A stretch of 64,000 nt of DNA from Haliotis rubra (GCF_003918875.1 NW_025765969.1:1302001-1366000); one strand, 5' to 3'; positions 341-63,722 are shown, counted from the stretch's first letter. Notes: generated by a model not told the origin, from the letters alone. Made by a program: numbers and translations.

Positions 341-1302
341 CTGAAACCAACAAAAAATTGAGACTGCAGAACACTTCACACCAGGACAGGAAGTACTAAA
401 TTCATTGTGTAAGGCAAATAAATATGTATGTTTCATTTGCTGTGTTTATGGATAAATCAACACGGAAAGAGCATGTTAAATCAATATTTTCACCCCAACC
501 GTTAGGTTTGGAGTGAGTGAGTGAGGTATTACACTGTTGAGCAATATTCTTGCAATATCAGGGTGGAGGGACTTCAGACAATGTACCCAAGCGGGTAATC
601 AAACAAAGGTCTTTAATGCGATGAGTGAACAGTTCAACCCCTACTCTACTTAACTGCCCCAGCTTGCCAGTTGAAAGTGTCTGACCAGTGAGTCAGACAT
701 CTTCACCTGTAACCGTGAAACGTCAAAATCTGCAACTGATCTATGTCAATAGTGGTGTTATTTCCCTCTGACATGGTCATTTCTGCATGTAGCATTCATT
801 CATTTTTATGTAGTTGAACAAAAAAAGACTGAGAAATACTGATCACTTTGTCTTTTCTTCATGCATCACTGACTATGATATGTTTAATTGCTGGAACCAT
901 TATTGGAAAATGACATAAAAATGTTTCAGCAATATTAGAGAATCAAACTGGGGTGTTGGCATGGTGGGCCAATGGCTGAACCACTGGGCTACCTACCTGC
1001 CCATTAACCACAAAATAACCAGTCAAGATCAAAAGCCTTTGTCTGTACATCATGAAGATATGTATTGGTAACAGCAATATGCGATTACTATATGATTTGG
1101 TGACCACAATATGTGATCTCAGTATGTCTTGGTAACTCAATTAAAAACATTTACAAAATTTCATGAATGTTCGCTTCTTGTGATCGTGAATAATGAATTG
1201 AATTCATTTGGGATACGGTTGGTTTCGCAAAAGACACGAGTAAATGATAACCCTAGTTTTCACCTCATCAAATTTCCACAACTCCATTGAGGCTAACGGT
1301 GT

Positions 1303-1586
1303 TTAATGATGGTCTGTATTGTTGTCATGGTGATTTGACACCTTCATCACGACACAAGTTCTCTGATGTCTCTGCAAGCCTGTTCGATATTTATAAACCT
1401 TTCCACAGTTACACATAAAGACGACCTGGTCGTGAACGGTCTCAACATGATAGACTCTTGCAACATAGTTTGTGAACACGCGGTCACACTGAGAGCAAGG
1501 GTAACCACCAACATTCAAATCACTCCTCGAATAACCAGAACTGGACTGCCCACTGTAGGGATACGAGTCTGTGTAGCTTTGCAAAC
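1303..1586 (-). CDS. Gene A variable terminal exon A12, zinc-finger pair
   Basis: Acceptor tcttgttgctttcag, phase 1; CSQC...HVETVH...CNC...HQRTC. Confidence 0.85.
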
Positions 1587-1683
1587 CTGAAAGCAACAAG
1601 AAAGCTTTTTCTAGTTCAACGACTTTATTACATTGTATGCTGCATATCTGAATGTGTTGCAAATACCAGGATATCAGAGCTAA

Positions 1684-2000
1684 GGCCAGATTAATTTTAT
1701 TTTTTGTTTTACAGTTCCACCTGCCGCATTTTTTCAAGAATAAGAAAAAGGAAAAGAATTTTCCCTGCTCAAAAAATAAAATCCTAAAGTTTTTATTGGC
1801 CAAAAATGTAAATATACAAGAAATTTTGTTTTTAGATTGGTTTTTGACCCATATACACTTCATAAATTGCCAAAAGTAACATACTTAGAGTATTTAGAAG
1901 AAATACTACTTTGACTGGTGACTTAAAATTTTCCCCCCTCCTGCCTTTAGGTTTTTCGAAGACAATAATCCGTAAAACAAGAAATAAAATTGGTCTGGCC
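1684..2000. mobile_element. MITE, PIF/Harbinger-like
   Basis: TIRs ggccagattaattttattt / aaataaaattggtctggcc flanked by TAA on both sides. Confidence 0.65.
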
Positions 2001-2783
2001 TAAAGGAAGGAAGAAAATCAGGTCACATCTGCTGGTGAAATCATCTGCTTTATAGCCTTTCTAATCAATATAATCTTAACTATATTACACAGTATGTTGC
2101 AGGTTTCAATGTGTTCCAAATACCAGACAATCCATGGATCAACAGCATGAGCATCGATCTATGCAATTGGAAACTGATGACATGCGTCAACCAAGTCAGT
2201 GAGTCTGACAAGCCGATCCCGCTAAGGTATCAGAGCTAAAAGGATAGCAAGGAAACTAGGTCATATCCACTGGTGAAATCATCTATGCGTCCTTTCGAAA
2301 GGAAATTAGTGCCGACTTTATCATACAGTATACTGAAAATCTGACTTTGTTACAAATTATAGGTACCAGAGCTGAAGCAACCAGGTCAGATCCAGAGCTC
2401 AGGAGGTGTCTCCATCAGCTAATGAGGTATTTTTTATTAAACTGTCTTGTTGAGTCCAAGCATGGAGTAAATGACACATCAGTAAGTGTGGTCTGTCTCA
2501 GGCAAATTCAACCACTAAGTGGCAAACTCAAAAACAGATTTGAAAACTAGGTGAACGTCATTTTCTTATTCTGTATTTGTGATATTTAACAAGTTGCTAA
2601 AAGTATAACTGCACTTCACTGACACATTTCAGAACACATTTCCTCGATCAAGGTTTGATGGAACTGAAAAATCTACTGGCAAGTCAAGAAAATGGTGTAT
2701 TACTTCATTTTCGGACTTCTGAAAGTTTGTTCAGTAACAGTTCTTATTCTGAATGTCAAGTAATTCTAAGCACGAATGAAACA

Positions 2784-3088
2784 TCAAGGTCTTGACTCTT
2801 CCAGTGCCCTTTTAGCTGCGGCGCAATCTGCATTCTGTCTCATATGTCGTTGTAAACCAGTCCTATATTTGTACATCTTTCCACAAACACATACAAAAGT
2901 CATTTCCTCATGAACAGTCTCCATGTGATACTTTCGAGTCTTGGGGTTCATAAACACACGTTCACATTCGGAACATGGGAATGAGCCTTTCCCGTCAGCC
3001 TGGAAACCCTGAACAAAGTCCTGATTGTAGGCCAAGCCCGAATAGTCTCTACCCTCTACTTGATAAGAATATCGCTCATCGGGATAAC
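2784..3088 (-). CDS. Gene A variable terminal exon A11, zinc-finger pair
   Basis: Acceptor ttttttgttgctttcag, phase 1; CSEC...HMETVH...CVC...HMRQNADC. Confidence 0.85.
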
Positions 3089-3567
3089 CTGAAAGCAACA
3101 AAAAATCTAGGTCTAATTCCTACCAATTAAGGTGTTGACTCAACTGGAATATGTATTCCTGTAGGTGCTGGCAGATGGTATGGACATGGAGTCACAAAAA
3201 AAACATCCATCTCACACAATATATTTGAATTTTGTCACCAGCTCAAGCTCTGGGTAGTTTTGATATGCAAACCAATGAAAGACACCTTTAATACCCAATT
3301 TTTCATGATCACAATATGCTGAGGCACTTCAACAACAATGAATCATTTCTGTGGAAATTGTCCAAATTGACAAGGACTTATAGAAAACACCTTCAGAAAT
3401 TTATATAGCAATCACTTGTCTGTCAAATAGACATCAACTTTCCTTTCCACCATACTGATTCCATAATGTGACACCACTTCACAAACCTATAACTTGTGGA
3501 AGAACCAACCTAAACATCTGCTGGACAATTGACCATCGAAAGACATCAAGACAGTTGTCAGCTTAAG

Positions 3568-3723
3568 ACTGACTGACTGAGTTTGGTTTTACGCCGCTTT
3601 TAGCAATATTCCAGCAATATCACGGCGGGGACACCAGAAATGGGCTTCACACATTGTACCCATGTGGGGATTCGAACCTGGGTCTTCGACGTGACTTTAA
3701 CCACTAGGCTACCCCACCACCCC
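3568..3723 (-). mobile_element. tRNA-derived SINE family 1
   Basis: A/B-box head, gatattgctggaatattgctaaaagcggcgtaaaac tail, TSD tgtcagcttaaga. Confidence 0.85.
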
Positions 3724-3834
3724 TGTCAGCTTAAGAGAATCACCATTGGAGGACATAAGACAGTTGTCAGTTTGAGATAAACACAAACCCCTGCCATAAA
3801 TCTTGTACAAATCACCAAAGTGCACTGTCCTGCA

Positions 3835-4162
3835 TTATTCATGTTTCTTCTTTGCGGCACACAAAGGACTGGTTCTCATATGTCTCTGAAGTCCAGTTCG
3901 CGGAATTTGTAAACTTTTCCGCAATTACAAGAGAAATCAATTTGTTCGTGTACAGTTTCGATATGGTAGCGTAATGTTCTGTATTTCATGAACACTCTAT
4001 CACACTCAGAACACGGGAAAGTCCTAATTCCTTCAGACGGAGGGTACAGGCCTGAACCTAATCCTGGATTCATACTGTACAACACTTGTCCCCCTCGCTG
4101 ATCTATTTCCAAAAGAGCATTTTGTGGACCACGTTGGAAAGTACTCGCACAACCATCAAAAT
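3835..4162 (-). pseudogene. Gene A variable exon A10, zinc-finger pair with frameshift near 3900
   Basis: Acceptor tttttgcttactttcag, phase 1; ttc-cg-cga-act carries 2 extra nt; the corrected frame reads KFRTGLQRHMRTSPLCAAKKKHE*. Confidence 0.75.
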
Positions 4163-5294
4163 CTGAAAGTAAGCAAAAAGTGGTCTTGTATTGACGTTAT
4201 CCCTCGTTCAAAATATCGGTCCACTTCATATTGAGCAAAAACAAAGCGAATAATCCATCTCCAAGATGGAACCAGTTGGAAATCATTTTGTGTTGAGATC
4301 CAATTCACACCATCCATGACAAACACTGGTAAGAAAGTAAACCATTTCAAAGAAAATGGCAAAAACAAGTAACAAGAAGACTTATTTCAAATGTTTACTT
4401 ACAAACGGAATGGCATAAAATACATTCTGTATACGGTGTAACGATAAGTAGAATCGACATGGCATGGTGATGATTATGACAATACTGGGAGAGAAACACA
4501 ATGTTCAGTTGTACGAGAACATAACCATATGAAACTTACTGACGATACACATGTAAAATGAAACACAAAAATGGATGTTTAAAAATCTGTCTTCTTATTC
4601 CACATTATTTATCTTGTTTCTTTCACACTATGCTAAACTACATCTGTGCAGCGAAGGTAACGTAATCTTATTATCATCAGCAAAATACACCCAGTCTCTG
4701 TCCCAAAACCATGACAAAATATGGGATGTCCATAATAGTAAAATACACATTAAACACATGATATGGCCCCCCTTATTTGTTTCACAACTCTGAACAGTCT
4801 GTAATGATGGACTGTAACAGGAAAATGATCTCATGCCGGACAGGTTAAGTGTAAGTTGAATTTCACACTACTTTAGGCAATATTACAACAATATTAGAAC
4901 AGGTAACACCAGAAATCAGCCTATTTAACCTGTTAGTAATCAAACCATGGCCTGAAGTGTCTTGAGCAGTCACTTTACCCACTGGGCCACCCCACAGCCC
5001 CTTTCAACTGACACAGTTTTTCTAACAAAGAGTAAGAAACTTGACAGATAACGATATCTTTCACTACACAACCAAACTTGTAACCATCAGGATTACGAGA
5101 GATTATGCACTTCTTTGCTGGTTAATAGTGACACTTAGCTATTTTCACAATTCGTACATCTGACAACTGAAAGTCTTATTAGTGAGTGAGTTGGGTTTTA
5201 TGCCGCTTTTAGCAATATTCCAGCAATATCACGGTGGGAGTCAGAAAGTCTTATTAGGAAATCTCTCAATTTCTAAAGACTTCAGTGAATAACA

Positions 5295-5566
5295 TTAAAT
5301 ATTAGCTCTCTTCGCATCAAGATACATCTGACACAACTTCTGATGCCGAAGCAAACCAGTTCGGTATGTGTAAACCTTTCCACAGATACAAGAAAATACT
5401 GTGTTATTGTGAATAGCTGCAATGTGGTTCCATCTAGCCCCAGTATTGGAGAACGCCTTATTGCACACGTAACAAGGATGACTGCCCTGTACAGGTAAGT
5501 GACCAATACTGGTAGCGGTTTGAAACTCTTCAGTAGGATCAACTGAGGTTCTGTAACCACGATAAC
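5295..5566 (-). CDS. Gene A variable terminal exon A9, zinc-finger pair
   Basis: Acceptor tttttgttgctttcag, phase 1; CYVC...HIAAIH...CIC...HQKLC. Confidence 0.85.
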
Positions 5567-5684
5567 CTGAAAGCAACAAAAAGTCAGTTCTAAATTTCTT
5601 CAATACATGAACCTGTCATTTCAGTTGCTTTCAGGCCTACTTTCCAAACTGATGTTTCAGACCATTATGCAGTCTTGGTCTGAG

Positions 5685-5850
5685 TGAGTGAGTGAGTATG
5701 GTTTTACGCCAATTTCTAGCAATATTCCAGCAATATCATGGTGGGGGACATCAGAAATGGGCTTCACACATTGTACCCATGTGGGGAATCGAACCCGGGT
5801 TTTCGGCGTGACGAGCGAACCCTTTAACCACTAGGCTACCCCAACGCCCC
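5685..5850 (-). mobile_element. tRNA-derived SINE family 1
   Basis: Full-length copy, (actc)n tail, TSD cagtcttggtctga. Confidence 0.9.
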
Positions 5851-6096
5851 TCAGTCTTGGTCTGAACATGGACTATTAAATAGATCAAAGAGATCCTGTT
5901 TCAGCATATCTGTTCCAGACTGACAGTGAAACTGGTCTCTTCTTGAAACAAACTGGCTTTGAACGATTAACTGACAAGGGTTATCAAGTACCACTTGTGT
6001 CCATCAGTATCTTTTGACAAACAATCAGGGGAAATTCAAAATGCTCCTGACTATAAACTTTACAACAGCTGTCTTAATGGGAGTCAATGACAAAAT

Positions 6097-6254
6097 GAGT
6101 GAGTTTGGTTTTACACTGCTTATAGCAATATTCCAGCAATAGCACGTGGGGGACACCAGAAATGGGCTAACACATTGTACCCATATATGGAATCGAACCT
6201 GGGTCTTCGGCGTGAAAAGCAAACGCTTTAACCTTTAGGCTACCCACCGTCGCC
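6097..6254 (-). mobile_element. tRNA-derived SINE family 1
   Basis: Aligns to the copy at 5685-5850. Confidence 0.8.
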
Positions 6255-6540
6255 AATGATAAAATGAACTGATTTACAAAAGCTGAAGTTCAAATACAAT
6301 TTATAATCCAAAACTGTGTTCCACAGGAGATATTGCTTGTGTGAGATCAAACGATATCTCCTAGGAAATATCGTTTTGACAGTAGATTTTGTACAATGCC
6401 CTAACAATGCTATGACATCATGTACTTGATGACGTCACAATGCTATGACATCGCTGCACTGCAAGTCTTAGGCAGTACCATGTTCAGATATGTACATCTT
6501 TCATTGAAAATTAATGAAGAGTGATTTTGGATGATAAATA

Positions 6541-6684
6541 GAATCTCACCCTCGTGTCTTCTGATATCAAATATATCAACACTTGTTGATAAAAGTAAAA
6601 ATATCTTCGGCAAGCCTCGGATATTTGTAACTTTATCAACTCGTGTTGATATAATTGATATCAGGAGACACTTGGGTGAGATTC
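6541..6684. repeat. Long imperfect palindrome (about 65-bp arms)
   Basis: gaatctcacc...gatatcaaatatatcaacac mirrored by gtgttgatataattgatatc...ggtgagattc. Confidence 0.75.
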
Positions 6685-6965
6685 TCTATGTATTCTAAAA
6701 TTTGAAAATGATTTTTCCACAATCACTGCTCTCTAAATGACGGTAGCAGACAGTTGTTGGCATTGATCCCAACTGCATAGACAGATGCTAAGCATGTCAA
6801 TCACTGAATCGTCTGGTCAAGAATCGATTATTTACAGACTGTCGTAATAGAGCTGAAATATTGCCGAGGGCAGGATTAAACAAAAAAACAAAGCAGAGAG
6901 TGATACTCAAGACAAAACAGATGCTGACTGGTGACCATCATGCCATACACTGCCAATATTCCCTT

Positions 6966-7323
6966 TCATTTGGCACCAGATTCAGCAGACATAATGAACA
7001 TGCTGCAGGATTTCTGGTGCCGCATAAGTCCAGTTCGGTAAGAATACACTTTCCCACAAACACAACGGAAGTTGTTATTCTCATGAATAGCCTCGATATG
7101 ATTCCATCGGGCGCGCTTTTATTTGAAAATGACTTTTCACACTGTGGACATGGGTATAATCTTAGGTGGCTTTCTTCAGAAAGGTAACTGTCTTGGCCTC
7201 TATCAATATGTTCTTCCCTCATGCTAGTTGCGGAAAAATTTGGATGTGCAAAACTGAAGCGACTATGACTGGCAGCCATTATCCTTTGATCATTACCGAA
7301 CCCTGCCATTGAACGTCCCAAAC
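6966..7323 (-). pseudogene. Gene A variable exon A8, zinc-finger pair with frameshift near 7112
   Basis: Acceptor ttttttgtttctttcag, phase 1; agc-gc-gcc-cga carries 2 extra nt; the corrected frame reads SARWNHIEAIHENNNFRCVCGKVYSYRTGLMRHQKSC. Confidence 0.75.
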
Positions 7324-7942
7324 CTGAAAGAAACAAAAAATTTAGATCTTTAATGACAAGATCTTTTAAACTTCAGGAAATGAAAATTTCAAAGCATTTC
7401 ATTTCTCCTACACAAATTTCTTGGTTTGATTTCATGGTTTGAAACAACATCCTAAATTCTTACCACAGACTTGAGTGAATTAAGCCATCAAAAAGTTGTG
7501 AATGTTGAGTGTGAGTGAGTTTTATGTAGCTTTTAAGCAATATTCCAGCAATATCACAACGAGGGACACCAGAAATGGACTACAGGCATTGTAAACATGC
7601 GGGCAATCGAACCCGAGTGTTCAACCAACGAACACTTGAACCACTAGCCTACCTAACCAACCTTGTGAATACACAAGTGAATGAACTTGAATATCTTTGA
7701 GTTGAGTAAAGCATGACATTATCTTAGAACTCATTCCCAACATGACATTATCTTGTGATTCATTCCCTACAGTTCCTAGTTTACCATAACAGTTCCTTCA
7801 CCAACGGTATCCATCAGACTGAACTGCTTCATCATTCATTTTGACAAGCGTCTTCCTAGCATTTACACATATCAGAGAAAACTCTAACTCACACATCCAA
7901 ACAATTGAAGGAATCCTCTTACCAACATGAATGTACAAAACA

Positions 7943-8274
7943 TCATTTTGGTTGTGCCTCTGTTTGAGTTTTGTTTTCTTGAAGTGAAAACAGACTACAA
8001 TTTTTCTGATGTCTAAGTAGTCCAGGTCTGTATGAATATTGTTTCCCACAAACACAGGTGAGATTTACTTTCTCGTGGACACATTTGATGTGATACCATC
8101 TAGAGTTGGCATTGGAAAACACTTTTTCACATCTAGAACAAGGATATGACCGATTTCTTGTTTCACCAGGCACATGAAAGGATGCATATTCTAATTGCTG
8201 ATTGGGCATTCTCCTCACATTCTGGGCACCAAAAGAATGGTTAAATCCACCCAAGCTCCAATAAGCATGATTAT
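7943..8274 (-). CDS. Gene A variable terminal exon A7, zinc-finger pair
   Basis: Acceptor tttttgttattttcag, phase 1; CSRC...HIKCVH...CVC...HQKNC. Confidence 0.85.
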
Positions 8275-8440
8275 CTGAAAATAACAAAAAACTTCGGTTC
8301 ATATCCTGTTCAACACCACTAATGTTACTCAACAATTATTCTTATTAAAAAAATCCCAACAAAATGGCCCAGTTTCTACAGTAATACAGGAAGTCAACCA
8401 GTTTTGGAAGAAAATGGTTACTGTGTTGAACTACCAAGAA

Positions 8441-8881
8441 CAGACTTGCCTACCCCCTTTTAAAGAAATAGTAAGATCAGCTAAAAAAAATAGTAAGGCA
8501 GGTGCATTTGATAGTAAGGCATGTTAATGTCAAGAGATAAAGGAAAAACATTGCTGGTTAAAATCTTAATATAGTGTTTAATAGTCAATTAGTCAAATGT
8601 GGTGCCGATCTAACTGACGTTTTAAAAAATCTTTCACTTTGAAATAAACTTTACCAGCACTGTTAGATGCAAAGATTATTTATTTATAATGTTTTCGATG
8701 CGACTTCTGTTTTCAGTACTTTATGTACCGTAAATGACTCTGTAAATAGCATGGGCATGCCTATATCTAGTATTCTACCACTTATTTGTAGAAGTAAGGA
8801 ATTTCAGTATGATCGTAAGGTCGTAATTTAGCACCAAAAATAGTAAGCCTTACGCCCAAATCGTAAGGATAGGCAAGTCTG
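8441..8881. mobile_element. MITE (non-autonomous DNA transposon)
   Basis: TIRs cagacttgccta / taggcaagtctg, direct flank caagaa. Confidence 0.7.
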
Positions 8882-9291
8882 CAAGAATTCAATAAGAATT
8901 AACAACCCCCAAGACGACAAACACTTGAATCCCCTCAGTCCTGAATGTGTAAATGCAAACTGCTCTATGAAAAGGACAACACTTTTCAAGCATCACAGCC
9001 TGTGCCTATTACTTTTGAGTTCCTTAGTATAACTAGTATTTCTATTTTGCATATTGTTTTCAATAAATATAGGTCTTGGTTCCGAGCTGATTTTACCCCA
9101 CCATAGTACTAGACAGTGTTTTTCAGTAGTATTAAGCAGCAGACGGGCATCATAACAGCTCAAATGCTTGTCACATATGCACACACATAAGAAAACAATC
9201 GGTTGTATAAATTCAGCGCATACAAGCTCGAGAAAGAATTTGAAAGTATCACTTTGCATTTTCAGCTCATACCAACAAACAATGTCACTTT

Positions 9292-9629
9292 TCATCCTTC
9301 AGTGTTCAAGGGTTCTGGTGGAGTCTGATTAACCAGCGCCACACTACAAGTTTTCTGATGTTTCAACAGTCCTGGTCTGTAGGTATACACCTTGCCACAA
9401 ACACAAGCAAAGCTGACATTCCTGTGAATAGCTTCAACATGGTTCCTCCTAGCTGTAGTGTTAGAAAACACTTTGCCACACTCCGTGCACTCAGAACCTG
9501 AAGGTCTTAAGCCAGGGGTTGAAAAGTTTGAATGTCTGGGATACAATGACTGAGTAAAATATGAAGCAAGTTTTGCCTTGTACATCCTGTCTTCCCATGC
9601 GTGACTAGGATAAGGTCCCTGGTTAGGAC
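9292..9629 (-). CDS. Gene A variable terminal exon A6, zinc-finger pair
   Basis: Acceptor tttttgttactttcag, phase 1; CTEC...HVEAIH...CVC...HQKTC. Confidence 0.85.
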
Positions 9630-10056
9630 CTGAAAGTAACAAAAATCTCGTCAGCTCCATTTTGTGTCGCTGTTCAACTTGAAAAATATTGGCAGTAAAT
9701 TAGGAGTGTATGTATAAGAGTAAATATAGATATTAGCTGCAGGCAGAAAATGCACAGCCCATGCATTACAGACGGAATTTACTTCCATTTCTTGGCGTCC
9801 ATTCTGGAAGCACCAAGAAAATGTCACTTTCTGAACAAGTTATTCTCAACTCTGTTTTCAGCTTCACATTGCAAGACAACTAATGCTGTGTTTTTCTGAC
9901 TTAGGGTGCAAGGCTTCAAAAATAAAAGAATGAGGAATCAATTCCAATTCTTTGTTACTAGTGAAAACAATAACCACTCTGCTTCATCCCCAGTTTACAT
10001 ATCATACAGTAAAGACCACTGTAAGCTAATGCAGGTCAGAAACATGTGCTATCCTC

Positions 10057-10483
10057 TACTGGTGTTCCGATTAATTGAAATAATCGAAGATTGGTCGCAG
10101 TGACCAAACGACCAAGCAATCAATCACATTTTCTCATAATCGAACAAACAATTTTTGAACTACTTTTTTAGTCTTTGAAATACTTGACAATGGAACATAT
10201 CTTAGAAGTTGTCAGGGCCTAAAAACGTGTTTAATTCTTAGAAAACTCACTTCACTAACTGAAAAGCCATGACTGAATATTTCTTGAAGACTCCAGAAAG
10301 TTTATGTTCATGATATATAAGTCATCACTGTAAAGTAGCAAGTTGCATCATGTTATACATATCTGCAATAACAACCTGGATAGGAAAATCTGAAAAATGA
10401 CGCTAACCAATTTTTTTTGGATGATTGTTCGTTGGTAATGAAGCAATCATCAATTGTGAGATTTCAACCAATTCCCAGCACTA
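10057..10483. mobile_element. hAT-like MITE (second copy at 41778-42187)
   Basis: 8-bp TSD ctatcctc; both ends shared with the 41778 copy. Confidence 0.7.
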
Positions 10484-10663
10484 CTATCCTCATGTTGTCC
10501 ATGGATGCAGTCAAACATTTTCTCTCCCAAACAGAATTAACTTAACCCAGCACAACCTTCACATATCTGGTTGCCTGAGAATAACTTTAACATCAGACTA
10601 ACATACACAAACTAGTATTAGTTTAAACAGTCTTTATTTTGACAGAACAAGAGTCAAGTCTGT

Positions 10664-11050
10664 GGCAAACTGGCTACAGGTCTTCTGGTGTTTGATCAAA
10701 CCCGGATGATATATGTACGTCTTCCCACAAACACATGTATATTCAACCGTATCATGAATGTATTTCCCCATATGACAGGGTGAGTCAATGTCAAGCCTGA
10801 AGACCAAGGGCAAACTGGCTACAGGTCTTCTGGTGTTTGATCAAACCCGGATGATATATGTACGTCTTCCCACAAACACATGTATATTCAACCGTATCAT
10901 GAATGTATTTCCCCATATGACAGGATGAGTCAATGTCAAGTCTGAAGACCAAGGGCAAACTGGCTACAGGTCTTCTGGTGTTTGATCAAACCTGGATGAT
11001 ATATGTACGTCTTCCCACAAACACATGTATATTCAACCTTATCATGAATG
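10664..11050. repeat. Tandem triplication (145-bp period) of the second finger and 3' end of exon A5
   Basis: ggcaaactggctacagg...atcatgaatg occurs three times. Confidence 0.9.
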
Positions 11051-13132: not shown

Positions 13133-13171
13133 CATCCCACAAATACAGCAAAATTATTCCAGGTAATTATA

Positions 13172-22870: not shown

Positions 22871-22883
22871 TTAATGTTCGTGA

Positions 22884-23427: not shown

Positions 23428-23482
<55 letters not shown>

Positions 23483-53173: not shown

Positions 53174-53338
53174 GGGGCGGTGGGGTAGCCTAGTGGCTAA
53201 AACGTTCGTTCATCATGCCGAAGACTTGGGTTTGATTCCCTACATGGGCACAATGTATGAAGCCCATTTCTGGTGTCACCCTCCGTGATATTGCTGGAAT
53301 ATTTTCCCAAAGCGGCATAAAACTCACTCACTCACTCA
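53174..53338 (+). mobile_element. tRNA-derived SINE family 1
   Basis: Full-length copy with (actc)n tail. Confidence 0.85.
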
Positions 53339-53925
53339 TTGACATTACTGTGCTCAAACTCACGAGTGTGCTGACACTTGAATGTAAGAAACACTTCAAG
53401 GAATAAATCATTGTCAGCATAATCTTATCCAAATGAACTCTATGCGTTTTGATGTATCCAGTCACAAAAAGGATCTCATGGGCTGACTGAATCGACATGC
53501 TCGTCTGAACATAATTATTCGTAATGTTTTCATTTTCATTCAAAACAAGTGCATGTTTTGATCGTAGTGTCATCTTAATTCCCAAACAAGGTCTGACTTT
53601 TGAAACTGAAGATTCTTTCTTTTTTTCTCTAACAATCGACATCCTCATCTGACATAATATTTCGTAACATTTTTTTCATTCAAAACAAATGTTTGTTTTA
53701 ATTGTAGTGTCTTAATTCCCAAACAAGATCTGAGTTTAGAAACTGAAGATTCTGTCCTTTTCTTGTTCTTGACCGCCATATAGCTGGAATATTGCTGAAT
53801 GCGGCGTAAAACTAACCTCACTCACTCACTCTTGTTCATGTTGGCATATGCTCTTTGAAGGAACTGTGTTAGTCAGAGAACAATGTATCTTGGCGATATC
53901 ACAAACCCCTCTTTGTTGCTTGCAG

Positions 53926-54254
53926 GTCTGGGTTCAAGTCACGGTTTGTCGAGCACTCCTCCTCAGAGCTTTGGATGCTCAGTGCAAATGTTTCCCCGAC
54001 AGCATTATACGCAAAGTGTAGAACATAATTGGAAACATGGGGACTCAGGGGATGCCAGTAGGAAGCGTCTGTGGCAGTGTGAACATTGTGGGAAAACATT
54101 CACGGGGCTTCAGAATAAGAGGTTTCATATAGAAGCTGTTCATGGAAATGCATCGTATTCGTGTGTTTGTGGGAAAAGTTACCGTTACCCCCGTAATTTG
54201 TCAAGGCATCAGAAAGAGTGTTCTGCATATCTCCAGTTGGGACATATCTCGTGA
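53926..54254 (+). CDS. Gene B variable terminal exon B14, zinc-finger pair
   Basis: Acceptor ctttgttgcttgcag, phase 1. Confidence 0.85.
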
Positions 54255-54385
54255 GAAATTCACACCGAATATGGCGGAAATGGATGGAAATATGCATCAA
54301 CGAATGCATGTCCTTGCTTCAAAACATCGGTGGTTGCTGACAGTCCAAAGCGGCATTAGACACAATCCACTCATTCCCTTTATTT

Positions 54386-54668
54386 TCATTGGACACGCAC
54401 AAATGGAAACTTATTTCCTGTCGTCTTGGACAAGTATTTCTGTTACATGGCGTACCTCTTCATCCTCTCTCCCCTTCCCAACCTTCTCCCTGTCACAGAT
54501 TGTGAAGACTTGATAGATGTTGCTTATGGTCATTGGACACCCACAAATTGAAACTTATTTCCTGTCGTCTTGGACAAGTATTTCTGTTACATGGCGTCCC
54601 CCTTCATCCTCTCTCCCCTTCCCAACCTTCTTCCTGTCACAGATTGTGAAGACTTGATAGATGTTGCT
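54386..54668. repeat. Tandem duplication, about 144-bp unit
   Basis: tcattggacac...gacttgatagatgttgctt twice. Confidence 0.85.
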
Positions 54669-54840
54669 TGACAACTACTTTGGATAGATTCACTCTGGAA
54701 TCTGTAGGGTATCATAACTGTTTAACATATATATCTGGATCCTGTTACAACACATGTACATGAGGTCTTGATGTTGTTATAGTCCCTTGTCCCTCATAGT
54801 GATAACTTTCAGAATAGATCTTCCTTTTTGTTGCTTTCAG

Positions 54841-55190
54841 GTCTTAGAATGGACCCAGTCATGGATAGTTCTGGCATGTATCACCCTAGTTCTCATGGCA
54901 TTACGGGCAGTTTGGGACCACGTTTGTCACTGATGCAAGGCACTCTTTCGATTCCGGGAAGTAAAGATTCTAACATGGCCCCCAAACCCACCTGGGCGTG
55001 TGAAGTTTGTGGGAAAATCTTCCAGACCCAGCAGAACAGAACTCTGCATGTCGAGGCATTGCATGATAATTTGACCTACCCATGTCCTTGTGGAAGAGTC
55101 TATAGTTACATCAAGAATTTGAACAGGCATCAGAAGTCCTGTTCTTTGTTTCAAGCATTTTATCAATCTGATCTTGAAAAGAAATCTTGA
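54841..55190 (+). CDS. Gene B variable terminal exon B15, zinc-finger pair
   Basis: Acceptor tttttgttgctttcag, phase 1. Confidence 0.85.
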
Positions 55191-55528
55191 AGTAGCTGGT
55201 CTTTGTGGTTGTTGGAAGGAAAGGAGCTAATTTCATTGAAAATGAACGGAAATGGTTCTTCCACCGACTTTTTTCTGCATTGGTATTTTGTTACAAGGAA
55301 ACATAGATACCATGTAAGCATCTTGGATGTTAGTTCATGATAGTTTCATCCTGCAGATTGAGTTACTGAATTTGGGTCGCTTTGCCATCTGGTCTTAATA
55401 TCTACTGGATATATAGCTGTGTTTCTTGAAAAAGTGGTGCGATGAATTGGTTCTTTAGATATAAGTGTTGTTGAGATAGGTTTGTGAACAGAAATCATTT
55501 CACATCATGCTACACCCCTTTAGCCTGA

Positions 55529-55691
55529 GGGGGCGGTGGGGTAGTCTAGTGGTTAAAGCGTTGGCTCGGCACGCCGAAGACCTGGGTTCGAATCCCCACA
55601 TGGGTACAATGAGTGAAGCCCATTTCTGGTGTCCCCTGCCGTGATATTGCTGGAATATTGCTAAAAGCGGCGTAAAACCAAACTCAGTCAG
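55529..55691 (+). mobile_element. tRNA-derived SINE family 1
   Basis: Full length, TSD cctttagcctga. Confidence 0.9.
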
Positions 55692-55956
55692 CCTTTAGCC
55701 TGATCACAGGGTTTTAGGTCTGTAGGATATGGTGTCATTTGTCAGTCCCTTGACAGGCCTTGAACCCTTACAGATTGTGACTGTGGATGGGCTTCAGTGT
55801 GTGTGGAACCATTTGGTTGAGGATATCAATGTCTCATCACCTGAACATCACCTGGAGCTTTGAATTGGAACAAATTCTATTGGAAACAGACTTTAACCCA
55901 ACTATTCGATCTCATGATTAAGACTGGCACTAGATGTGACTTTTTGTTGATTTCAG

Positions 55957-56288
55957 ATTTTGGAACTGAGTCAAGACATTATTCTGGAAGTAATCGCCAG
56001 GAATCCCATGTGGGATATAGGAATGATTTCATGCCGTATATGCCTGGAGATAATCATGCTGGTTCTGTAACGTACGGATTGTCTGGTTGTCAAGGTGACA
56101 GTCCCAGACCACTGTGGCAGTGTGAAATTTGTGGGAAAACTTTCACTGGACAGCAGAATAAGAAGCTTCATGTTGAAGCTGTGCATAAGAACGTCACTTA
56201 TCCGTGTGTTTGTGGCAAGGTGTACAGATACCCTAGGGCTTTAAGTCGCCATCAGAAGAGTTGTGCTCTGTCGGGTCAAGTTGGGTAG
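55957..56288 (+). CDS. Gene B variable terminal exon B16, zinc-finger pair
   Basis: Acceptor tttttgttgatttcag, phase 1. Confidence 0.85.
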
Positions 56289-56522
56289 AATATACATGGA
56301 CTACATCAGTATTGGTTGTGCTCAGACGAATTTAGTCTTACGAACTTCTGTTTGCTTGCGCCATTTGAAATGCCACAGTGACACTGACATTTTGTTTTCA
56401 AGTTTGATGAAATGTGTTCATCAAAGTGATTGAGTTTGACACACAGAATGCTTCTTTTGCATAATTTTAAGTTGTTTGAATAAAGAGACGATGGCTTACT
56501 TTTGACTTTGTGTTGCTTTCAG

Positions 56523-56836
56523 ATTTCGGAACAGACTCAAACCAAATGGGTTTGGATTATGGAGGTTCAACGTGTTCAGACAGAATTATATATGGAGTTA
56601 GTTCTTGTGATTTTGGAAAGCGCTTTTTCCATTGTGAACAGTGTGGGAAGATATTTTCCAGCAAGCAGACCAAGACTATACACATTGAGGCTGTACATGA
56701 AAACCTGACACATGAATGTATTTGTGGGAAAGTTTACAAATATCGGAGAGCATTGAATAGACACAGAAAACTTTGTCCTGTCTATTGTAGTGTATCTTCT
56801 AACAATTTAGGTTCATACAATATGGACTCTAAGTAG
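56523..56836 (+). CDS. Gene B variable terminal exon B17, zinc-finger pair
   Basis: Acceptor ttgtgttgctttcag, phase 1. Confidence 0.85.
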
Positions 56837-57636
56837 AGATTCTGATTGTTAAGCAGTACAGAGACTTTGACAAAACCGTATGGAAATGGAAACTTGGAAG
56901 CAAATGTGTGGACAAATTGTGTCAGATTTTTAAAGATAAATTCTTCCTTGGGAAACAAAGTAAAGTGAATAGGTTTGACATGCATGATTCAGATCTAAAA
57001 TGAGTCTTCCTGAGGGGGTATAAGGGGTGGTGGGGTAGCCTTGTGGTTAAAGCGTTCACTGAAGACCTGGGTTTAATTCCCTTCATGGCTACAATGTGTG
57101 AAGCCCATTTCTGGTTTCCTCCCCATGATATTATACGCCGGTGTAAAATTAACTCACTCACTCCTGGGGGTAATCCTTGGGGTAAAAATAAAAGATAATA
57201 ATGTGAGATTTATAATATTTTATGTTGTTTATATATGGTTAGTGTAATATGAGCTTAACTGGTTTATTTTGTACTGTTGCTGAAATCTCAATCTTGGTGT
57301 ATGACAGGATCTGATAACAAGACAAAATGAGTGTTTTGAATTTGCAAAATACAGAATTCTGTAATGAAATAAAACTAGAATTTTTTTCTGATCTCTTGAT
57401 CAAAGTATTGATTGCTGATAAAGGTCACAGATTAAAAAAAAAAAAATATTCTGACTTCCAACTTTGCCTATGTGGACCCTCAAATATGAAACCCTGTGAT
57501 TACAAACTGATATTCATGAGAAACTTGACGTTTTCCCCTTCCCATGATATGATAATCGGAAAGAGTCACTTCCTGAAACATTTACTGTAGTGGTCCAGAT
57601 AGGATGTTGTGATGTTCAGATGTCCCTACAGAAGAT

Positions 57637-57799
57637 GGGCGGTGGGTTAGCCTAGTGGTTAAAGCATTTGCTTGTCACACCGAAGACCAGGGTTCGATTC
57701 CCTTTATGGGTACAATGTTTGAAGCCCATTTCTGGTGTCCCCAGCCATGATATTCCTGGAATTTGCTAAAAGCGCCCGTAAAACCATACTCCTCACTCA
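57637..57799 (+). mobile_element. tRNA-derived SINE family 1
   Basis: TSD ccctacagaaga. Confidence 0.85.
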
Positions 57800-58020
57800 C
57801 CCTACAGAAGAGATGCAAGTTGGAAACTTACAATCACCTCCAGTGCCTGTGTTCCAGTAAAACATTTGTGCCTATCATTGTATTGCTTCAACAATCCTGA
57901 TGCCAAGACAGACTCTTGACTGAATTTGAAGTTATTTGTTGATCTCAAGACTCAATTTTTCATGACATGAGATTCAGCAAACGGGGCAAGCGTCATTCAT
58001 TTTCAAACTTTTATTTTCAG

Positions 58021-58343
58021 AGTGTATACCTGTTGGTTGTAGCACTGGCGAGGATGTTAGTTCTCGATGGCCCTGTACACAGTGCAGCAAGACATTTGCC
58101 TCACAACAGAACTTGGGAGTCCATGTTGCTGCCATTCATGAAAATATCACACATATTTGTGTTTGTGGGAAGGTCTACAAGTACCACCGAGGACTTCGAC
58201 ACCATCAGCTGAGTTGTGGCGTTCTTGTGGGTGATACTGCTGGAGATGGGAATGATGCGTACAGATGTGTCTGTGGAAGAACGTTCAATTGTCTGATCTG
58301 GCTTCAGAAGCACCAAGAGGAATGTCTGTTGATGATTGGTTGA
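58021..58343 (+). CDS. Gene B variable terminal exon B18, three zinc fingers
   Basis: Acceptor cttttattttcag, phase 1; WPCTQC...HVAAIH, CVC...HQLSC, CVC...HQEEC. Confidence 0.8.
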
Positions 58344-59940
58344 TTGGTATCATACAGATGTGTTAAAGGCAAGGTCTGCTGGTACCACAGAGGAATAAGA
58401 GCTCCATCAAGGGTGTACAGGTGTCTGATTGGGCTTCAGGAGGAAGTCTGTGAATGATGATGGTTGATTAATATCATGCAGTCAATACAGATGTGTTTTG
58501 TACGTAGGTGTACAAGTAACACAGGAATAGGGCACCATCACAGGGGTGGAAATAACCCATTGCCCGACATCCGAGTCCAGTGTTTTTTTCTGTCGGGCAA
58601 GCAAATTTGTATATCACACTGTACCGGTGTCCAGTTGACTTTCCAATGTTAATTATGTTGTTTATTTAAAAAACCAACAAGAAAAGTTAACTCATCAATT
58701 ATGAGATTTTGACCAGTTCCCAGCACTAACAGATGCATCTGTCGAGGGGAGCAGCTATCTCATTGGGCACAGAAGCACAGACAACAATGTAGTTGATTGG
58801 TTGACTTGTGTGGAGTACATGGGTGAGGAGGGTTAGAGAAGGATTATTGTTCAATTCTCAGCATATATTTCTTGTTATCCTTGTGAACACATTTCTTAAG
58901 TGTGATGGACACACTGAAGTTATGTTTGAAAATTGTTGAAAAGGCAGGAAGGACATTTGTAACCGTATAATTCATTAAGGACTGGCCACATTTATTGATT
59001 TTCTTATGCTTCAGAAATTGATAGTTATAACCTGTAAAGAATTGGGTTCTGTTGTGGAAATAATAACGTATTTCCTTGAATGGTGTTTCAGTTTGGTCTG
59101 CAGCAACCTAAATGGTCTCCTCAGATGTTTCTGTAAATCCAATGTAATAGTGTGGCTTGTGGTTAAAGTATTTGCTTGTCTCATAAAATTCGCAGGTTTG
59201 AATCCCACATGGGTACAGTGTACAAGCCCATTTCTGGTGTCCTTTGCTGTGATTGACAAACTAACAACCCTTACTAGGAGCCTGGAGTACTGCTAAAAGT
59301 GGCTTAAACTACACACTCGCAAACCGCTTTATCTAAAATGTTCCTTTCTTGGCACTTTTGGCTGTTATATCCCAGGATGCATCTTAATTCGGTTGCCTTT
59401 TGTTTATTGTCTTACGTGTGATGATAGCTGAAGTTGAAAGTGAAACTTTTTGGTTGTGGGGCGATAGGATAGCCTAGTGGTTAAAGCATTCGCTAGTCAT
59501 GTTGAAGACCCTGGTTCGATTCCTCACATAGGCACAATGTGTGAAGCCAATTTCTGGTGTCCCCTGCTGGAATATTGGTAAAAGTGGCATAAAACTAAAC
59601 TCACTCATTCACTTTGGGTTGTGGTATGATATTTAGTCAGCATAGTCATGGATGGGGGCGGTGAGGTAGTCTAGTGGTTAAAGCGTTTGCTCGTCATGCT
59701 GAAGACCCGAGTCCTGGTGTCCCTGCCATGATATTGCTGGAATATTGCTAAAAGCGGCATAAAACCAACCTCAATTGCACTAATCGTGGATGGTTCGAGT
59801 GCCAGATGTCAAACCCATGCTGTTTGCTGAAAGGGCGAAGAATTCATGTTCAACAGTCGTTGCTTTAAGTTTTGATGTTGAATGTCGGCACATGATCAAT
59901 ATCATTATTGAATCAAGTCTGGATCTTTTGTTGTTTTCAG

Positions 59941-60293
59941 GATACGGATCCACCAATGTGAGTCTCGTCAGTCCTGATAATTGTAACCCAGGTTTTCCTG
60001 GAGACAGAGGTCAACAGCCTGGAATATTTGGATCCTATCTTGAAAACATCTCATCTTCAGAATTAAAACATATTCCAATGCTAAATTTGGGGAGAGTTGA
60101 GTCATTAGGCAAACGCAGATCTGTCCGGTGGCCGTGTGATGAATGTGGCCGAATTTTCACGGACCCTCATTCCCGAAAGCAACACAGGGAAGCCATTCAT
60201 GAGAAAGTCAAGTACACGTGTCACTGTGGGAGGGTGTTTTCTTATCGTAATACTTTACAGAGACATCAGAAGTACAATTGTGTGCTGAAATAG
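59941..60293 (+). CDS. Gene B variable terminal exon B19, zinc-finger pair
   Basis: Acceptor cttttgttgttttcag, phase 1; CDEC...HREAIH...CHC...HQKYNC. Confidence 0.85.
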
Positions 60294-61826
60294 TAGGAAA
60301 TAGATAAAAAATGGTGTGTTTAATCCTTCAGTTTCTTGGGGCGGCGGGCTGGTGGTTGAAATGTTTGCTCGTCACGCCGAAGACCTGGGTTCGATACCCC
60401 ACATGGGTACAATGTGTGAAGCCCATTTCTGGTGTCCCCACCGTGATACTGCTGAAATATTGCTAAAAGTGTTGTAAAATTGAACTCACCGACTCACTCA
60501 CTCACTTCAGCTTCCTGGATTGAGTGCACGGCCCACCATCGGTCATTCTGTAACTGACCTGTTGTCCTTCATCAGTGTCACGGTTTAACTATATGTAGAA
60601 CAGTCCGTTTCACTCCCTGCTTGCCTCACATGTTGTGTTCAAGCTACAGTTACTAACTTAGTGTTAATCGTTAGTCAATCTTATTTGTGCAAGTGTTCAA
60701 ACCCATACTTCTAGTTGTGAATTTAATGAAGGCCCTATGTAACAACAAACTTTAACCAAACACAAAACTTTCTTCTGATGCTGCTGCTGCCAAGGATTCA
60801 CCTTCATAGACTTCATTCAGTGTTCAAGGAGGTGACTTTTTAGCAGAGAGCTATTTGGTTTTTCATGGGAACAGCTGATTCACACTTTTTTCATTCATTT
60901 AAAGTCAGACATAATGGTGTTGATTTGCTTTGGTTGCTGTTGGAGATTAACCATTGAGAGACAACTGAATCATGTGACTTGTTGAACTATTTGTTCAACT
61001 CTGGGTTTTTAGGGGAACAGCTGATTGATTGATTTCATGATCGTGATGACTGCTCAGAAGGTTTGAGCATCATCAATAAGACTCTGACTTTCTAATGTTA
61101 GAGGGGCGGTGGGGTAGCCTAGGGGTTAAAGTGTTTGCTCGTCACGCCGAAGACCTGGGTTCGATTCCCCACATGGGTACAATGTGTGAAGCCCATTTCT
61201 GGTGTCCACCCTCCATGATATTGCTGAAATATTGCTAAAAGTGGGCTAAAACAACCTTGGTGTGAAGAAGGTTATATTTTATGTTAATTTCTGGATGGAA
61301 ATTTGGTCATTCCATTGTCCATTACCTATGAGATAGGTTGTCCCGAGTTGTCGGTTTTCATTCATTCATTTTCATTTGCACCAGTGAGTGAAAACATTAC
61401 AACTCATTCATGCTGTCTTTATTTCCAATGTTGCCAAGGTTACTGCTGCTTCTGTATCATGATTCCTGGTACAATGTTCAATGAAGACGTGACAATAAAT
61501 ATCTGAATTAATACTGTGGTGTTTGTTTACTTTGAACATTTGTGAGCATTTTATTGGATGTTAGATGAGTCAGACTTTGACTCACTAGAATTGAAACAAA
61601 TGTTTCAAACCATATACACATACATTGTCCAACATCTTAAACCTTTTGGGATTTATGAAACACACTCCACGACTTCTTTTCACTTTATATTATACACAAA
61701 ACTCATTTTTATAATAAAAACTCTTTTATTGATAGAATGTCATTCTCCCTGTTTAAAGTTACTATGATGATAATGATAAGGATATTTAGACGGCACTAGT
61801 TCCACATCACCGAGGGATATGCTCAA

Positions 61827-61828
<2 letters not shown>

Positions 61829-61883
<55 letters not shown>

Positions 61884-61902
61884 ACAGACAGACAGACAGA
61901 CA
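61829..61902. repeat. (CA)n/(CAGA)n microsatellite
   Basis: Direct reading. Confidence 0.95.
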
Positions 61903-62360
61903 GGACAAATAGTGATTGTGTTGGAAGAGGTGTTTTTAGTCCAGACTGGTATCGTATATGCACTCTTGAGGTTAAATGGGAGAGAGTTCCACAAATATTA
62001 TATTTTCATTTCTGGCACACAGACACGTACATGTACCCATCATGCACCAACATGGCCATTTCCTGTATTAAGAAGCTCCATTCTTGATGTGATGCATGCA
62101 ACAAGGAAGTCTAACACACAGAATGAAGTGGCTCTTCCTGGGCATCATTGTTGAAAGACCTCAACGATGTGTTAGATTTCCTGACTTCCTGGGGCGGTGG
62201 TGTAGCCCAGTGGCTGAAGCGTCCACTCCTCATGCTGAAAGCCTGGGTTCAATTCCCCACTTGGGTTCAATGTGTGAAGCAGATTGCTGGTGTCATCCTG
62301 CTGGAATATTGCTAAAAGGGGCGTAAAACCATACTCACTCACACTGGCTTCTGAAGTCTA

Positions 62361-62525
62361 AGGGGCAGTGGGGTAGCCTAATGGTTAAAGCGTTGGCTCG
62401 TCACGCCGAAGACCTGGTTTGAATCCGACATGGGTACAATGTGTGAAGCCCATTTCTGGTGTCCCCCACCGTGATGTTCGGTATATTGCTAAAAGCGGCG
62501 TAAAACCAAACTGTCAGTCAGTCAG
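62361..62525 (+). mobile_element. tRNA-derived SINE family 1 (more plus-strand copies near 43105, 46345, 46839, 57023, 59457, 59655, 60338, 61102, 62191, 63411)
   Basis: TSD tctgaagtctaa. Confidence 0.85.
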
Positions 62526-63722
62526 TCTGAAGTCTAATGGATAGTACATCTGCCCAGAGGGGTGGAAGGTCAGTCATTTGATGACAGCTGCGTCATACCA
62601 AAAGACATTAAAGGAAGGTTCTTATGGTTACACTGGCAGTATCTGTGGGGTAAAACAAGTACGGGTTCATTCAGAGTCTGTGTTGTTTGTCTGAGTGTCG
62701 TATCAGTGTCAGTCTGCAACATGGTATGTGATAGCACTATAGAACCAGCCCTTAAACTAGTGGCTGGTTGGAGCAGCTTCTCACACACATGTACATCCAT
62801 CACACAGTGTTAGTGCACATCTATAGAATGCAACATTATATATAATTTCACTTGTGCTTCATGTGACATTTATGACACTTTGGATGCAACAAATCTTTGT
62901 GCACCATCAAGGAATCTATGTATTTTCACTCGTAACACAAAGACGTTCGGGTAACTTGTACAAAATGAACTATGCATATCCTTACCACTAGAAAACGATT
63001 CTATGTGGGCATATTTTCTAACAAACATTTTATTTGCAAAATCTCCTGATAGAATTGTGATGGAAACTCCCAGTATCTTCTGACAAACTGAGAAATAGAA
63101 ATGGAGCCAATACGGTATTCAAGAAGTATAGGACCAAGCTATTAAACCGTAATTTATCTTTCAGGACAGTTTGACAGTTTTGTAAATCTATCATTCAACA
63201 TGTTTGAAAGCCTTCTGAGTCATTCCTGTGATTAGCTGATTTAAAACCAAAGTATAATTCCGTATGAATTTCAAATCCTTGTTCTTTGAGCAAAGAATAG
63301 ATTGATATCCTGCCCTTTAGATTGCCAGGGATCATGGCCCAAGATAATAGCCGAGGAGTTTCTATAACTCATATATCACATGGAATGGTCCTCTTCACCC
63401 ATATCAGTCTGGGGTGGCGGTGGGGTAGCCTAGCGGTTAAAGTGTTGGCTCGTCACACTGAAGGCCCAGGTTTGATTCTCCACATGGGTACGGTTTGTGA
63501 AGCCCATTTCTGGTGTCCCCCGCCAAGATATTGCTGGAATATTGTTATAGGCGAGTAAAACTAAACTCACTCACTCACTCACATCAATCTGAAGCCCTGG
63601 ATATGTACGTTCTTGATCATTTGACTTGTAACAAGCATTTTCTATTGACTAAGTCTGTTTCCAATGTAACTGGCTGTCATCAGATTCTCCTTTGACTAAT
63701 GCCGCCCTTTTGTTACTTGCAG

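Follow-up and report, generated by a model that had tools for sequence, protein, structure and literature searches.

Family-1 short interspersed elements lie in the direction of transcription in terminal zinc-finger exon arrays of abalone genes

The window analysed here, a stretch of 64 kb from the abalone Haliotis rubra (C1079:1,302,001-1,366,000), contains two paralogous genes, A and B. Their first coding exons lie head to head and are 85% identical in DNA sequence, as revealed by the list of open reading frames (ORFs) and a self-BLAST of the window. Behind each of these exons lies an array of alternative terminal exons encoding zinc fingers. Both arrays are interspersed with short interspersed elements (SINEs) of one family, family 1, and nearly all of these point in the direction of transcription: they are on the minus strand in array A and on the plus strand in array B. 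The one-way orientation is confirmed, and it extends past the window. The exons concerned are the following.

20247..21275, minus strand: first coding exon of gene A, constant part, starting MFIETLEF (ORF; no Pfam domain)
25676..26623, plus strand: first coding exon of gene B, H. rubra LOC124275018 (ORF of 315 aa, 100% identical to LOC124275018, P0001)
66..16136, minus strand: array A, with 11 or more intact alternative terminal exons that each encode a C2H2 and a CCHC-type zinc finger (ORF list, zinc-finger motif scan, Pfam zf-C2H2)
32494..60293, plus strand: array B, with 16 or more intact alternative terminal exons for zinc fingers (ORF list, Pfam, zinc-finger motif scan)

Array A runs past the window edge to about C1079:1,222,000, array B to at least C1079:1,414,000. 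The open frames of the arrays begin with an acceptor-like ..LLLSG and contain one pair of a C2H2 and a CCHC-type finger each. In the NCBI annotation, dozens of isoforms are given per gene in four Haliotis species, which fits a constant part spliced to one terminal exon out of many alternatives. Every terminal exon comes with an acceptor, a stop codon and a 3' end of its own, and the single constant donor must reach one among dozens. The gene direction was confirmed from the annotated isoforms for the window and for two comparison loci: L029, a 107-kb locus of H. cracherodii orthologous to a different paralog (C1079:602,560), and L030, the 111-kb H. rufescens ortholog of gene B.

In Drosophila lola and mod(mdg4), a constant 5' part joins one of many alternative 3' zinc-finger exons. 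The abalone genes resemble them in having a constant N-terminal exon, dozens of alternative terminal zinc-finger exons and many isoforms. They differ in three respects. First, the constant exons lack a detected BTB domain; those of genes A and B matched no Pfam family at E <= 0.1, including an N-terminal BTB/POZ domain. Second, the fingers form a C2H2 and CCHC pair and are not of the FLYWCH type. Third, ten paralogous genes lie in one cluster. This cluster of about 1 Mb, to which the gene pair belongs, contains ten paralogous constant exons (C1079:422,000-1,414,000 and C208:196,000-237,000), three head-to-head pairs (C1079, 1,322-1,328 kb, 986-990 kb and 732-738 kb) and 1,442 candidate zinc-finger exons, whose strand is always that of the nearest upstream constant exon.

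Family 1 is a dispersed, non-coding SINE of about 170 nt. An exact 22-mer of it is present in 48,885 copies in the 1.38-Gb genome, with the two strands balanced. Its head (TAGTGGTTAAAGC...GGTTCGAATCC) agrees by eye with the A and B box consensus of RNA polymerase III. The head of a single copy was called tRNA-like by ARAGORN (48131-48219, in the SINE at 48143..48290), and no SINE copy of the window matched Rfam at gathering score. Families 1, 2/3 and 4 have a 3' domain of about 60 nt in common. The usual tail of family 2/3 is (CAAA)n; family 4, with a different tRNA head and an ACTC tail, shares only these 60 nt or so with family 1. The first-pass annotation had pointed out that the (ACTC)n tail read in antisense gives GTGAGT, and its reverse is indeed a run of overlapping GTGAGT. 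A common family-1 subfamily ends in (AGTC)n; the reverse of this tail has no GTRAGT and no other GT-containing donor.

The window was searched with an nhmmer profile built from 14 good copies after a first BLAST pass, which gave 45 hits. The copies are listed below (sense and antisense refer to the direction of the array).

510..662, minus strand: family-1 SINE, old, sense to array A (nhmmer, 72 bits)
936..1005, minus strand: family-1 SINE, 5' half only, sense (nhmmer)
3564..3725, minus strand: family-1 SINE, (AGTC)n tail, 14-bp target-site duplication, sense (nhmmer)
4849..5004, minus strand: family-1 SINE, old, sense (nhmmer)
5179..5244, minus strand: 3' domain and ACTC tail only, sense (nhmmer)
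5680..5853, minus strand: family-1 SINE, 15-bp target-site duplication, sense (nhmmer)
6088..6254, minus strand: family-1 SINE, 14-bp target-site duplication, sense (nhmmer)
7509..7664, minus strand: family-1 SINE, sense (nhmmer)
12951..13137, plus strand: the sole antisense family-1 copy of the window, (AGTC)n tail, 13-16-bp target-site duplication, 35 nt after the stop of exon 13172-13585
15573..15744, minus strand: family-1 SINE, sense (nhmmer)
16240..16377, minus strand: family-1 SINE, 13-bp target-site duplication, sense, last minus-strand copy ahead of the flip (nhmmer)
22044..22215, plus strand: family-1 SINE between the genes, 15-bp target-site duplication (nhmmer)
22882..23049, plus strand: family-1 SINE between the genes (nhmmer)
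23728..24010, minus strand: family-2 SINE (body B, short ACTC tail) between the genes (similarity search)
24500..24776, plus strand: family-2 SINE between the genes (nhmmer; upstream body sequence)
31655..31780, plus strand: family-1 SINE, old, common to H. rufescens, sense (nhmmer, ortholog comparison)
33767..33855, plus strand: family-1 SINE, 3' part, sense (nhmmer)
36437..36595, plus strand: family-1 SINE, sense (nhmmer)
36614..36900, minus strand: family-2 SINE, antisense, one GTGAGT on the sense strand, in a composite duplicated at 43571-43892
37683..37837, plus strand: family-1 SINE, old, common to H. rufescens, sense (nhmmer, ortholog comparison)
42293..42602, plus strand: two family-1 SINEs head to tail (42293-42427, 42434-42602), the second inserted immediately after the first one's tail and flanked by a 13-bp target-site duplication
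43101..43621, plus strand: two family-1 SINEs (43101-43269, 43341-43621), the second with an internal 33-bp tandem repeat
43639..43930, minus strand: family-2 SINE, antisense, one GTGAGT on the sense strand, duplicate of 36614-36900
46341..46500, plus strand: family-1 SINE, 12-bp target-site duplication, sense (nhmmer)
46836..47001, plus strand: family-1 SINE, 13-bp target-site duplication, H. rufescens site empty (nhmmer)
48143..48290, plus strand: family-1-like SINE, its head the only tRNA-like call (nhmmer, ARAGORN)
53171..53343, plus strand: family-1 SINE, H. rufescens site empty (nhmmer)
53771..53831, plus strand: 3' domain and ACTC tail, H. rufescens site empty (nhmmer)
55527..55697, plus strand: family-1 SINE, young, 13-bp target-site duplication, H. 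rufescens site empty (nhmmer)
57021..57165, plus strand: family-1 SINE, sense (nhmmer)
57633..57801, plus strand: family-1 SINE, 13-bp target-site duplication, common to H. rufescens (nhmmer)
59155..59777, plus strand: three family-1 SINEs in series (59155-59321, 59456-59614, 59654-59777), all sense (nhmmer)
60337..60500, plus strand: family-1 SINE, common to H. rufescens (nhmmer)
61100..61256, plus strand: family-1 SINE, H. rufescens site empty (nhmmer)
62190..62528, plus strand: two family-1 SINEs head to tail (62190-62345, 62359-62528), the second immediately after the first one's tail and flanked by a 15-bp target-site duplication
63412..63583, plus strand: family-1 SINE, H. rufescens site empty (nhmmer)

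The counts made by eye in the first-pass annotation are borne out. About 9 of 10 family-1 copies of array A had been placed on the minus strand; the search gives 10 minus-strand hits and one plus-strand hit (12951-13137) at positions 1-17,000, where the gene is on the minus strand. For array B (29,200-64,000), whose gene is on the plus strand, about 23 of 23 on the plus strand become 24 plus-strand and no minus-strand family-1 elements. Array B has two minus-strand hits in all, the family-2 copies at 36614 and 43639. The orientation flips at the gene pair, as had been claimed, between 16,377 and 22,044, the interval that holds the first coding exon of gene A. Without merging, 34 of 35 copies are sense (binomial test, p = 2e-9). 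When same-strand copies less than 100 bp apart are joined into one cluster, 27 sense clusters and one antisense cluster remain. The antisense copy is the top-scoring family-1 copy of the window, which suggests a recent insertion. Its tail is (AGTC)n, so that the absence of GTGAGT reported for this exception is correct.

The copies are separate insertions, because they have target-site duplications, the orthologous H. rufescens sites are empty and there is no flank homology. About 20 copies have duplications of 10-16 bp with at most one mismatch, in agreement with the earlier statement that many have their own. At least seven copies of array B are specific to H. rubra, the H. rufescens site being empty; three or four old copies are common to both species. 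Conversely, at least one insertion is specific to H. rufescens and absent from the H. rubra site. The lineage-specific insertions of both species are sense every time. In the self-BLAST of the window, only one SINE-bearing duplicated block was found (36538-36865 and 43571-43892, 93% identical, 7 kb apart), which contains a family-1 tail end and an inverted family-2 copy. The two family-2 copies that had been raised as a caveat do put one GTGAGT each on the sense strand, but they count as one event because they belong to this single duplicated composite. Segmental duplication as a source of the co-orientation was therefore rejected: the one duplicate that bears SINEs is 329 bp long, the target-site duplications differ and H. 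rufescens sites are empty.

The same bias was found at other loci, where it again follows the direction of transcription. In L030, the ratio of sense to antisense copies is 23:0 as far as the last zinc-finger exon found; in the following 15 kb it is 3:2, one of the two antisense copies still lying inside the annotated gene range. In L029, the ratio is 34:2. Three single copies beside the first exons of other H. rubra paralogs are all sense. After merging, three species and three paralogous loci together give 84 sense and 3 antisense clusters.

Ordinary introns were represented by 193 kb (L001-L020) of four dynein heavy-chain genes, from the N2 to the D6 domain, the exon direction being taken from paralog matches. 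Here family 1 is present at 23:16 sense to antisense, and the ACTC-tailed copies that retain their head are at 12:12; the bias is far stronger in the arrays (p = 1e-6; array clusters 84:3 versus 23:16, Fisher p = 3e-7). One dynein gene (L006-L010, C2074:103,338-153,337) has nine antisense family-1 SINEs in a row and then seven sense copies; orientation domains that do not follow the gene direction thus exist. To obtain a baseline for the whole genome, pairs of copies of a 13-mer SINE core at a distance of about 0.5 kb were counted on contigs C1-C1535. There are 71 direct (non-satellite) and 31 inverted pairs, corresponding to about 70% co-orientation. The arrays exceed this baseline, since 0.7 to the power of 23 (a run of 24) is about 3e-4.

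Within the arrays, the bias tracks the tail type. ACTC-tailed elements are at 87:7 and the (CAAA)n-tailed family 2/3 is at 20:15 (Fisher p = 1e-5), so that, in the same DNA, elements lacking the signal show no bias. Family 4 is at 29:7 overall and at 17:1 among copies found through the 3' end and tail. It does not set the arrays apart from ordinary introns, because old fragments matching family 4 are also mostly sense in the dynein introns (about 10:1).

Donor-like hexamers outside the SINEs were counted in 198 kb of SINE-masked array, with expected numbers from a second-order Markov model. GTRAGT is found at 62 sense-strand and 95 antisense-strand positions, and its observed/expected ratios of 0.61 and 1.19 are suggestive only, because those of control hexamers are also as low as 0.66. 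GGTRAG behaves in the same way (about 0.6 sense, about 1.2 antisense). The depletion is about two-fold and confined to the sense strand of the arrays. A scarcity of sense-strand donors, expected by the first-pass annotation, is therefore seen in the larger sample; within the window by itself the difference (12 versus 14-15) is not significant. Poly(A) hexamers are balanced in the arrays (240 sense versus 262 antisense) and depleted on the sense strand of the dynein genes (140 versus 205). This fits an inverted signature of U1 sites and poly(A) signals, the reverse of the usual gene-body pattern, in a zone where many 3' ends stay usable. The U1-poly(A) signal axis, or telescripting, was reportedly described by Kaida and colleagues in 2010 and by Almada and colleagues in 2013. 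In both situations U1 sites and poly(A) hexamers are asymmetric on the transcribed strand; unlike gene bodies, the arrays deplete donor hexamers on the sense strand and not poly(A) hexamers. To our knowledge this inverted pattern has not been described for terminal-exon arrays, no dedicated search having been made.

As judged from sequence, the best-supported cause of the bias is that U1-type donor repeats are selected against on the sense strand of the terminal-exon arrays; we favour this tentatively, with a little less than even confidence. The very abundant (ACTC)n-tailed retroposons (family 1, and family 4 in the sister species) have inserted in the arrays repeatedly, and the surviving copies are nearly all gene-directed. 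According to this explanation, an antisense copy would bring two to six overlapping GTGAGT onto the pre-mRNA, every one of which matches the intron half of a 5' splice site perfectly and is a potential binding site of the U1 small nuclear ribonucleoprotein. In an ordinary intron, such donors would be mostly harmless. In an array, an upstream terminal exon could become internal and be spliced to the next waiting acceptor, or bound U1 could suppress cleavage and polyadenylation close by. Such suppression by bound U1 is known, and harm could arise equally by acceptor hijacking or by loss of nearby 3' end formation. Purifying selection, presumably effective in a large abalone population, would then remove antisense insertions and tolerate both sense copies and the family whose reversed tail reads (TTTG)n. 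The first-pass annotation had proposed a purge of antisense insertions because stray donors would hijack the acceptors. Tail specificity, the contrast with dynein introns and the depletion of donor hexamers speak for it; the sense excess and antisense survivors with intact GTGAGT do not agree with it.

Besides the limited weight of the hexamer depletion, several results weigh against selection as the cause. The density of the exact 22-mer in the H. rubra arrays is 0.135 copies per kb in sense (7.6 times the genome average) and 0.019 in antisense, the genome average being 0.018 per strand. Compared with dynein introns or the genome average, sense copies are at 3-7-fold density, and antisense copies remain at about the genome average; for this reason purging alone cannot account for the numbers. 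The antisense density does not fall below this average; as the local neutral insertion rate may differ from it, the result weakens, but does not exclude, selection. Family 2/3 is not enriched in the arrays. The sense excess needs a further cause, candidates being a locally high insertion rate of the family or insertion beside resident tails (about 15% of copies). The missing donor of the exception at 12951-13137 is weak evidence, because the (AGTC)n subfamily is common. The dynein control comprises four genes of one class with same-direction runs of their own, and close pairs are already largely co-oriented throughout the genome.

The antisense survivors also weigh against it. The arrays contain three antisense family-1 copies, at 15, 35 and 80 nt behind the stop codon of a zinc-finger exon, with the reversed tail toward the exon:

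window 13138-13172, minus strand: antisense survivor
L029:77155-77340: antisense survivor (77169)
L029:80060-80200: antisense survivor (80076)

Two of the three, 77169 and 80076, have intact GTGAGT repeats, located 20-75 nt behind a stop codon, and this position is where a donor should disrupt most. The antisense survivors of the arrays are not poorer in donors than antisense copies in dynein introns: at least one GTRAGT is present in three of four and in nine of 13, respectively. Sense copies are found within 100 nt of a stop in only 2 of 86 cases. Antisense family-2/3 copies are likewise concentrated behind stops, 7 of about 20 lying within 260 nt of one, as compared with 1 of 25 in sense orientation. 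Such clustering could reflect a local target preference, or the copies could have been co-opted, be it as donors or as GU-rich downstream elements.

The excess of sense copies, with antisense copies at about the genome average, would also follow if insertion itself were directional. The machinery of ACTC-tailed elements might nick one strand preferentially at these loci, in relation to germline transcription or to forks from an origin at the shared promoter, and the (CAAA)n family might use another partner. Family 1 is 2.8 times as dense in the H. rubra arrays as in dynein introns and family 2/3 is 0.8 times as dense, so that family-specific targeting of some kind is indicated. The mirror symmetry around the head-to-head promoters fits outward forks or transcription. 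Runs in dynein genes regardless of gene direction, the genome-wide co-orientation and the sense orientation of even the young, lineage-specific insertions point the same way. Against this, ACTC-tailed copies with their head are evenly divided in the dynein genes, and the sense-strand depletion of donor hexamers outside SINEs is left unexplained. Studies of de novo L1 insertions from 2019 reportedly found replication- or transcription-linked LINE-1 biases well under two-fold, as compared with about 20:1 here. At 48 young copies (window and L001-L030), the target-site duplications of 10-18 bp have the consensus T|TC(A/C)T at their 5' edge, with G nearly absent from -1 to +3, a site with microhomology to the ACTC tail. 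This motif is merely 1.04-1.27 times commoner on the sense strand, and a strand-skewed target motif was rejected on that ground. Directional insertion, the main rival of selection, seems to us possible but doubtful. It is rather unlikely that the machinery inserts at about 20:1 relative to germline transcription or shared-promoter forks, the orientation then being a fossil record of transcription or replication and not of selection.

Alternatively, a sense bias could be a general property of ACTC-tailed SINEs in most broadly or germline expressed genes, the arrays being long, SINE-rich cases and the dynein genes exceptional. The predominance of direct pairs agrees with this, as does the sense fraction of about 69% in dynein introns when all SINE families are pooled. 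However, the 23:16 ratio of family 1 was obtained in verified dynein intron and includes the run of nine antisense copies among plus-strand exons, and at 0.7 co-orientation per neighbour pair the run of 24 has the low probability given above. In addition, the H. rufescens bias is gone beyond the last zinc-finger exon, but with n=5. We consider this explanation unlikely.

Inverted copies of one family at close spacing might also be unstable or form harmful double-stranded RNA, or new copies might insert beside resident tails, so that a dense region drifts to its first orientation. About 15% of copies lie directly behind another copy's tail. Same-direction copies less than 100 bp behind another's tail contribute an additional 4 copies to array B, 9 to L030 and 1 to L029; dynein genes have runs in both directions; and the bias peaks where the copy density peaks. 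However, all three independent arrays have sense polarity, as do the three single copies beside other first exons, and family 4 has the same polarity despite the short sequence that it shares with family 1. Moreover, family 2/3 is unbiased at a density similar to that of family 4, and most copies are 0.5-3 kb apart with unrelated target-site duplications. This mechanism is very improbable as the cause. New copies, each with a separate target-site duplication, are often found 7-40 bp behind a resident tail and share the direction of the resident copy (window 42293-42602, 59456-59777 and 62190-62528; L029 55405-56168), which suggests that resident (ACTC)n tails are preferred insertion targets.

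A positional role of the sense copies as poly(A) site, downstream element or branch point was rejected, as 86 copies are evenly spread and avoid only the first and last 100 nt between exons; the even spread likewise gives no support to the earlier suggestion that sense SINEs aid internal transcription.

A sense bias of Alu elements near human exons was reportedly described by Lev-Maor and colleagues in 2008. For human Alu, a sense bias within 20-200 bp of exons has been ascribed to purifying selection on cryptic splice signals (Zhang, Romanish and Mager 2011, PMC3088655). The abalone case is similar in that a SINE is under-represented in the orientation whose reverse strand bears a cryptic splice signal, most strongly at splicing decisions. 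The Alu signal is an acceptor from the reversed poly(A) tail, with a modest fold-change close to exons. In abalone, by contrast, it is a run of GTGAGT donors from the reversed (ACTC)n tail, the bias is about 95% over arrays of 35-100 kb, and a second tail type serves as internal control. The principle is therefore already known from human Alu; new are the donor-mimicking microsatellite tail, the effect size and the internal control by tail type. LINEs (long interspersed elements), LTR (long terminal repeat) elements and dog SINEC_Cf show an antisense bias in genes, which comes from polyadenylation signals on their sense strand (PMC3088655; bioRxiv 10.1101/2020.11.30.405357). There too, the orientation of retroposons in transcription units is set by the RNA-processing signals they carry. 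In abalone the polarity is opposite, sense being favoured, and the signal is a splice donor or U1 site and not a poly(A) signal. Two papers on mollusc SINEs include no analysis of orientation.

If selection against stray donors is indeed the cause, terminal-exon arrays would impose a sequence grammar in which sense-strand U1-type donors are forbidden and poly(A) sites allowed, and selection would be so strong that hundreds of retroposon insertions are sorted by their direction. One-way ACTC-tailed SINEs, with the (CAAA)n-tailed family as neutral control, could then be used to find such arrays and to gauge splicing constraint in molluscs without RNA. If insertion is directional, its magnitude would be unprecedented for target-primed retrotransposition. 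With either cause, SINE orientation in Haliotis cannot be treated as neutral.

Parts of the SINEs have also expanded into satellites, with a 67-bp unit of the 3' domain and a 39-bp unit of the head, and elsewhere with units of about 100 bp and about 162 bp:

L020:3607-5099
L030:84491-85466
C1112:2,640,873-2,642,071
C1424:1,123,845-1,125,487

Two further exons of the window belong to or are listed with array B:

40471-41340, plus strand: pogo-type helix-turn-helix exon within array B (ORF list, Pfam)
31186-31470, plus strand: RAG1-N-like exon listed with array B (ORF list, Pfam)

Read joints in runs X1-X4 were considered as splicing and rejected as repeat artefacts; the runs represent low-coverage DNA, in which exons and spacers are both covered about 3-fold and repeats about 100,000-fold. 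Behind the constant exon lies a non-coding block of 190 nt, about 91% conserved (window 28597-28786 and 18151-18340; L029:13822-14008). It is conserved between both window paralogs and the H. cracherodii paralog far above the surrounding intron. At window 10664-11098, a 145-bp tandem repeat of 2.7 copies that are 98% identical triplicates the second-finger motif of exon 10936-11445; it is a very recent internal duplication inside a variable exon.

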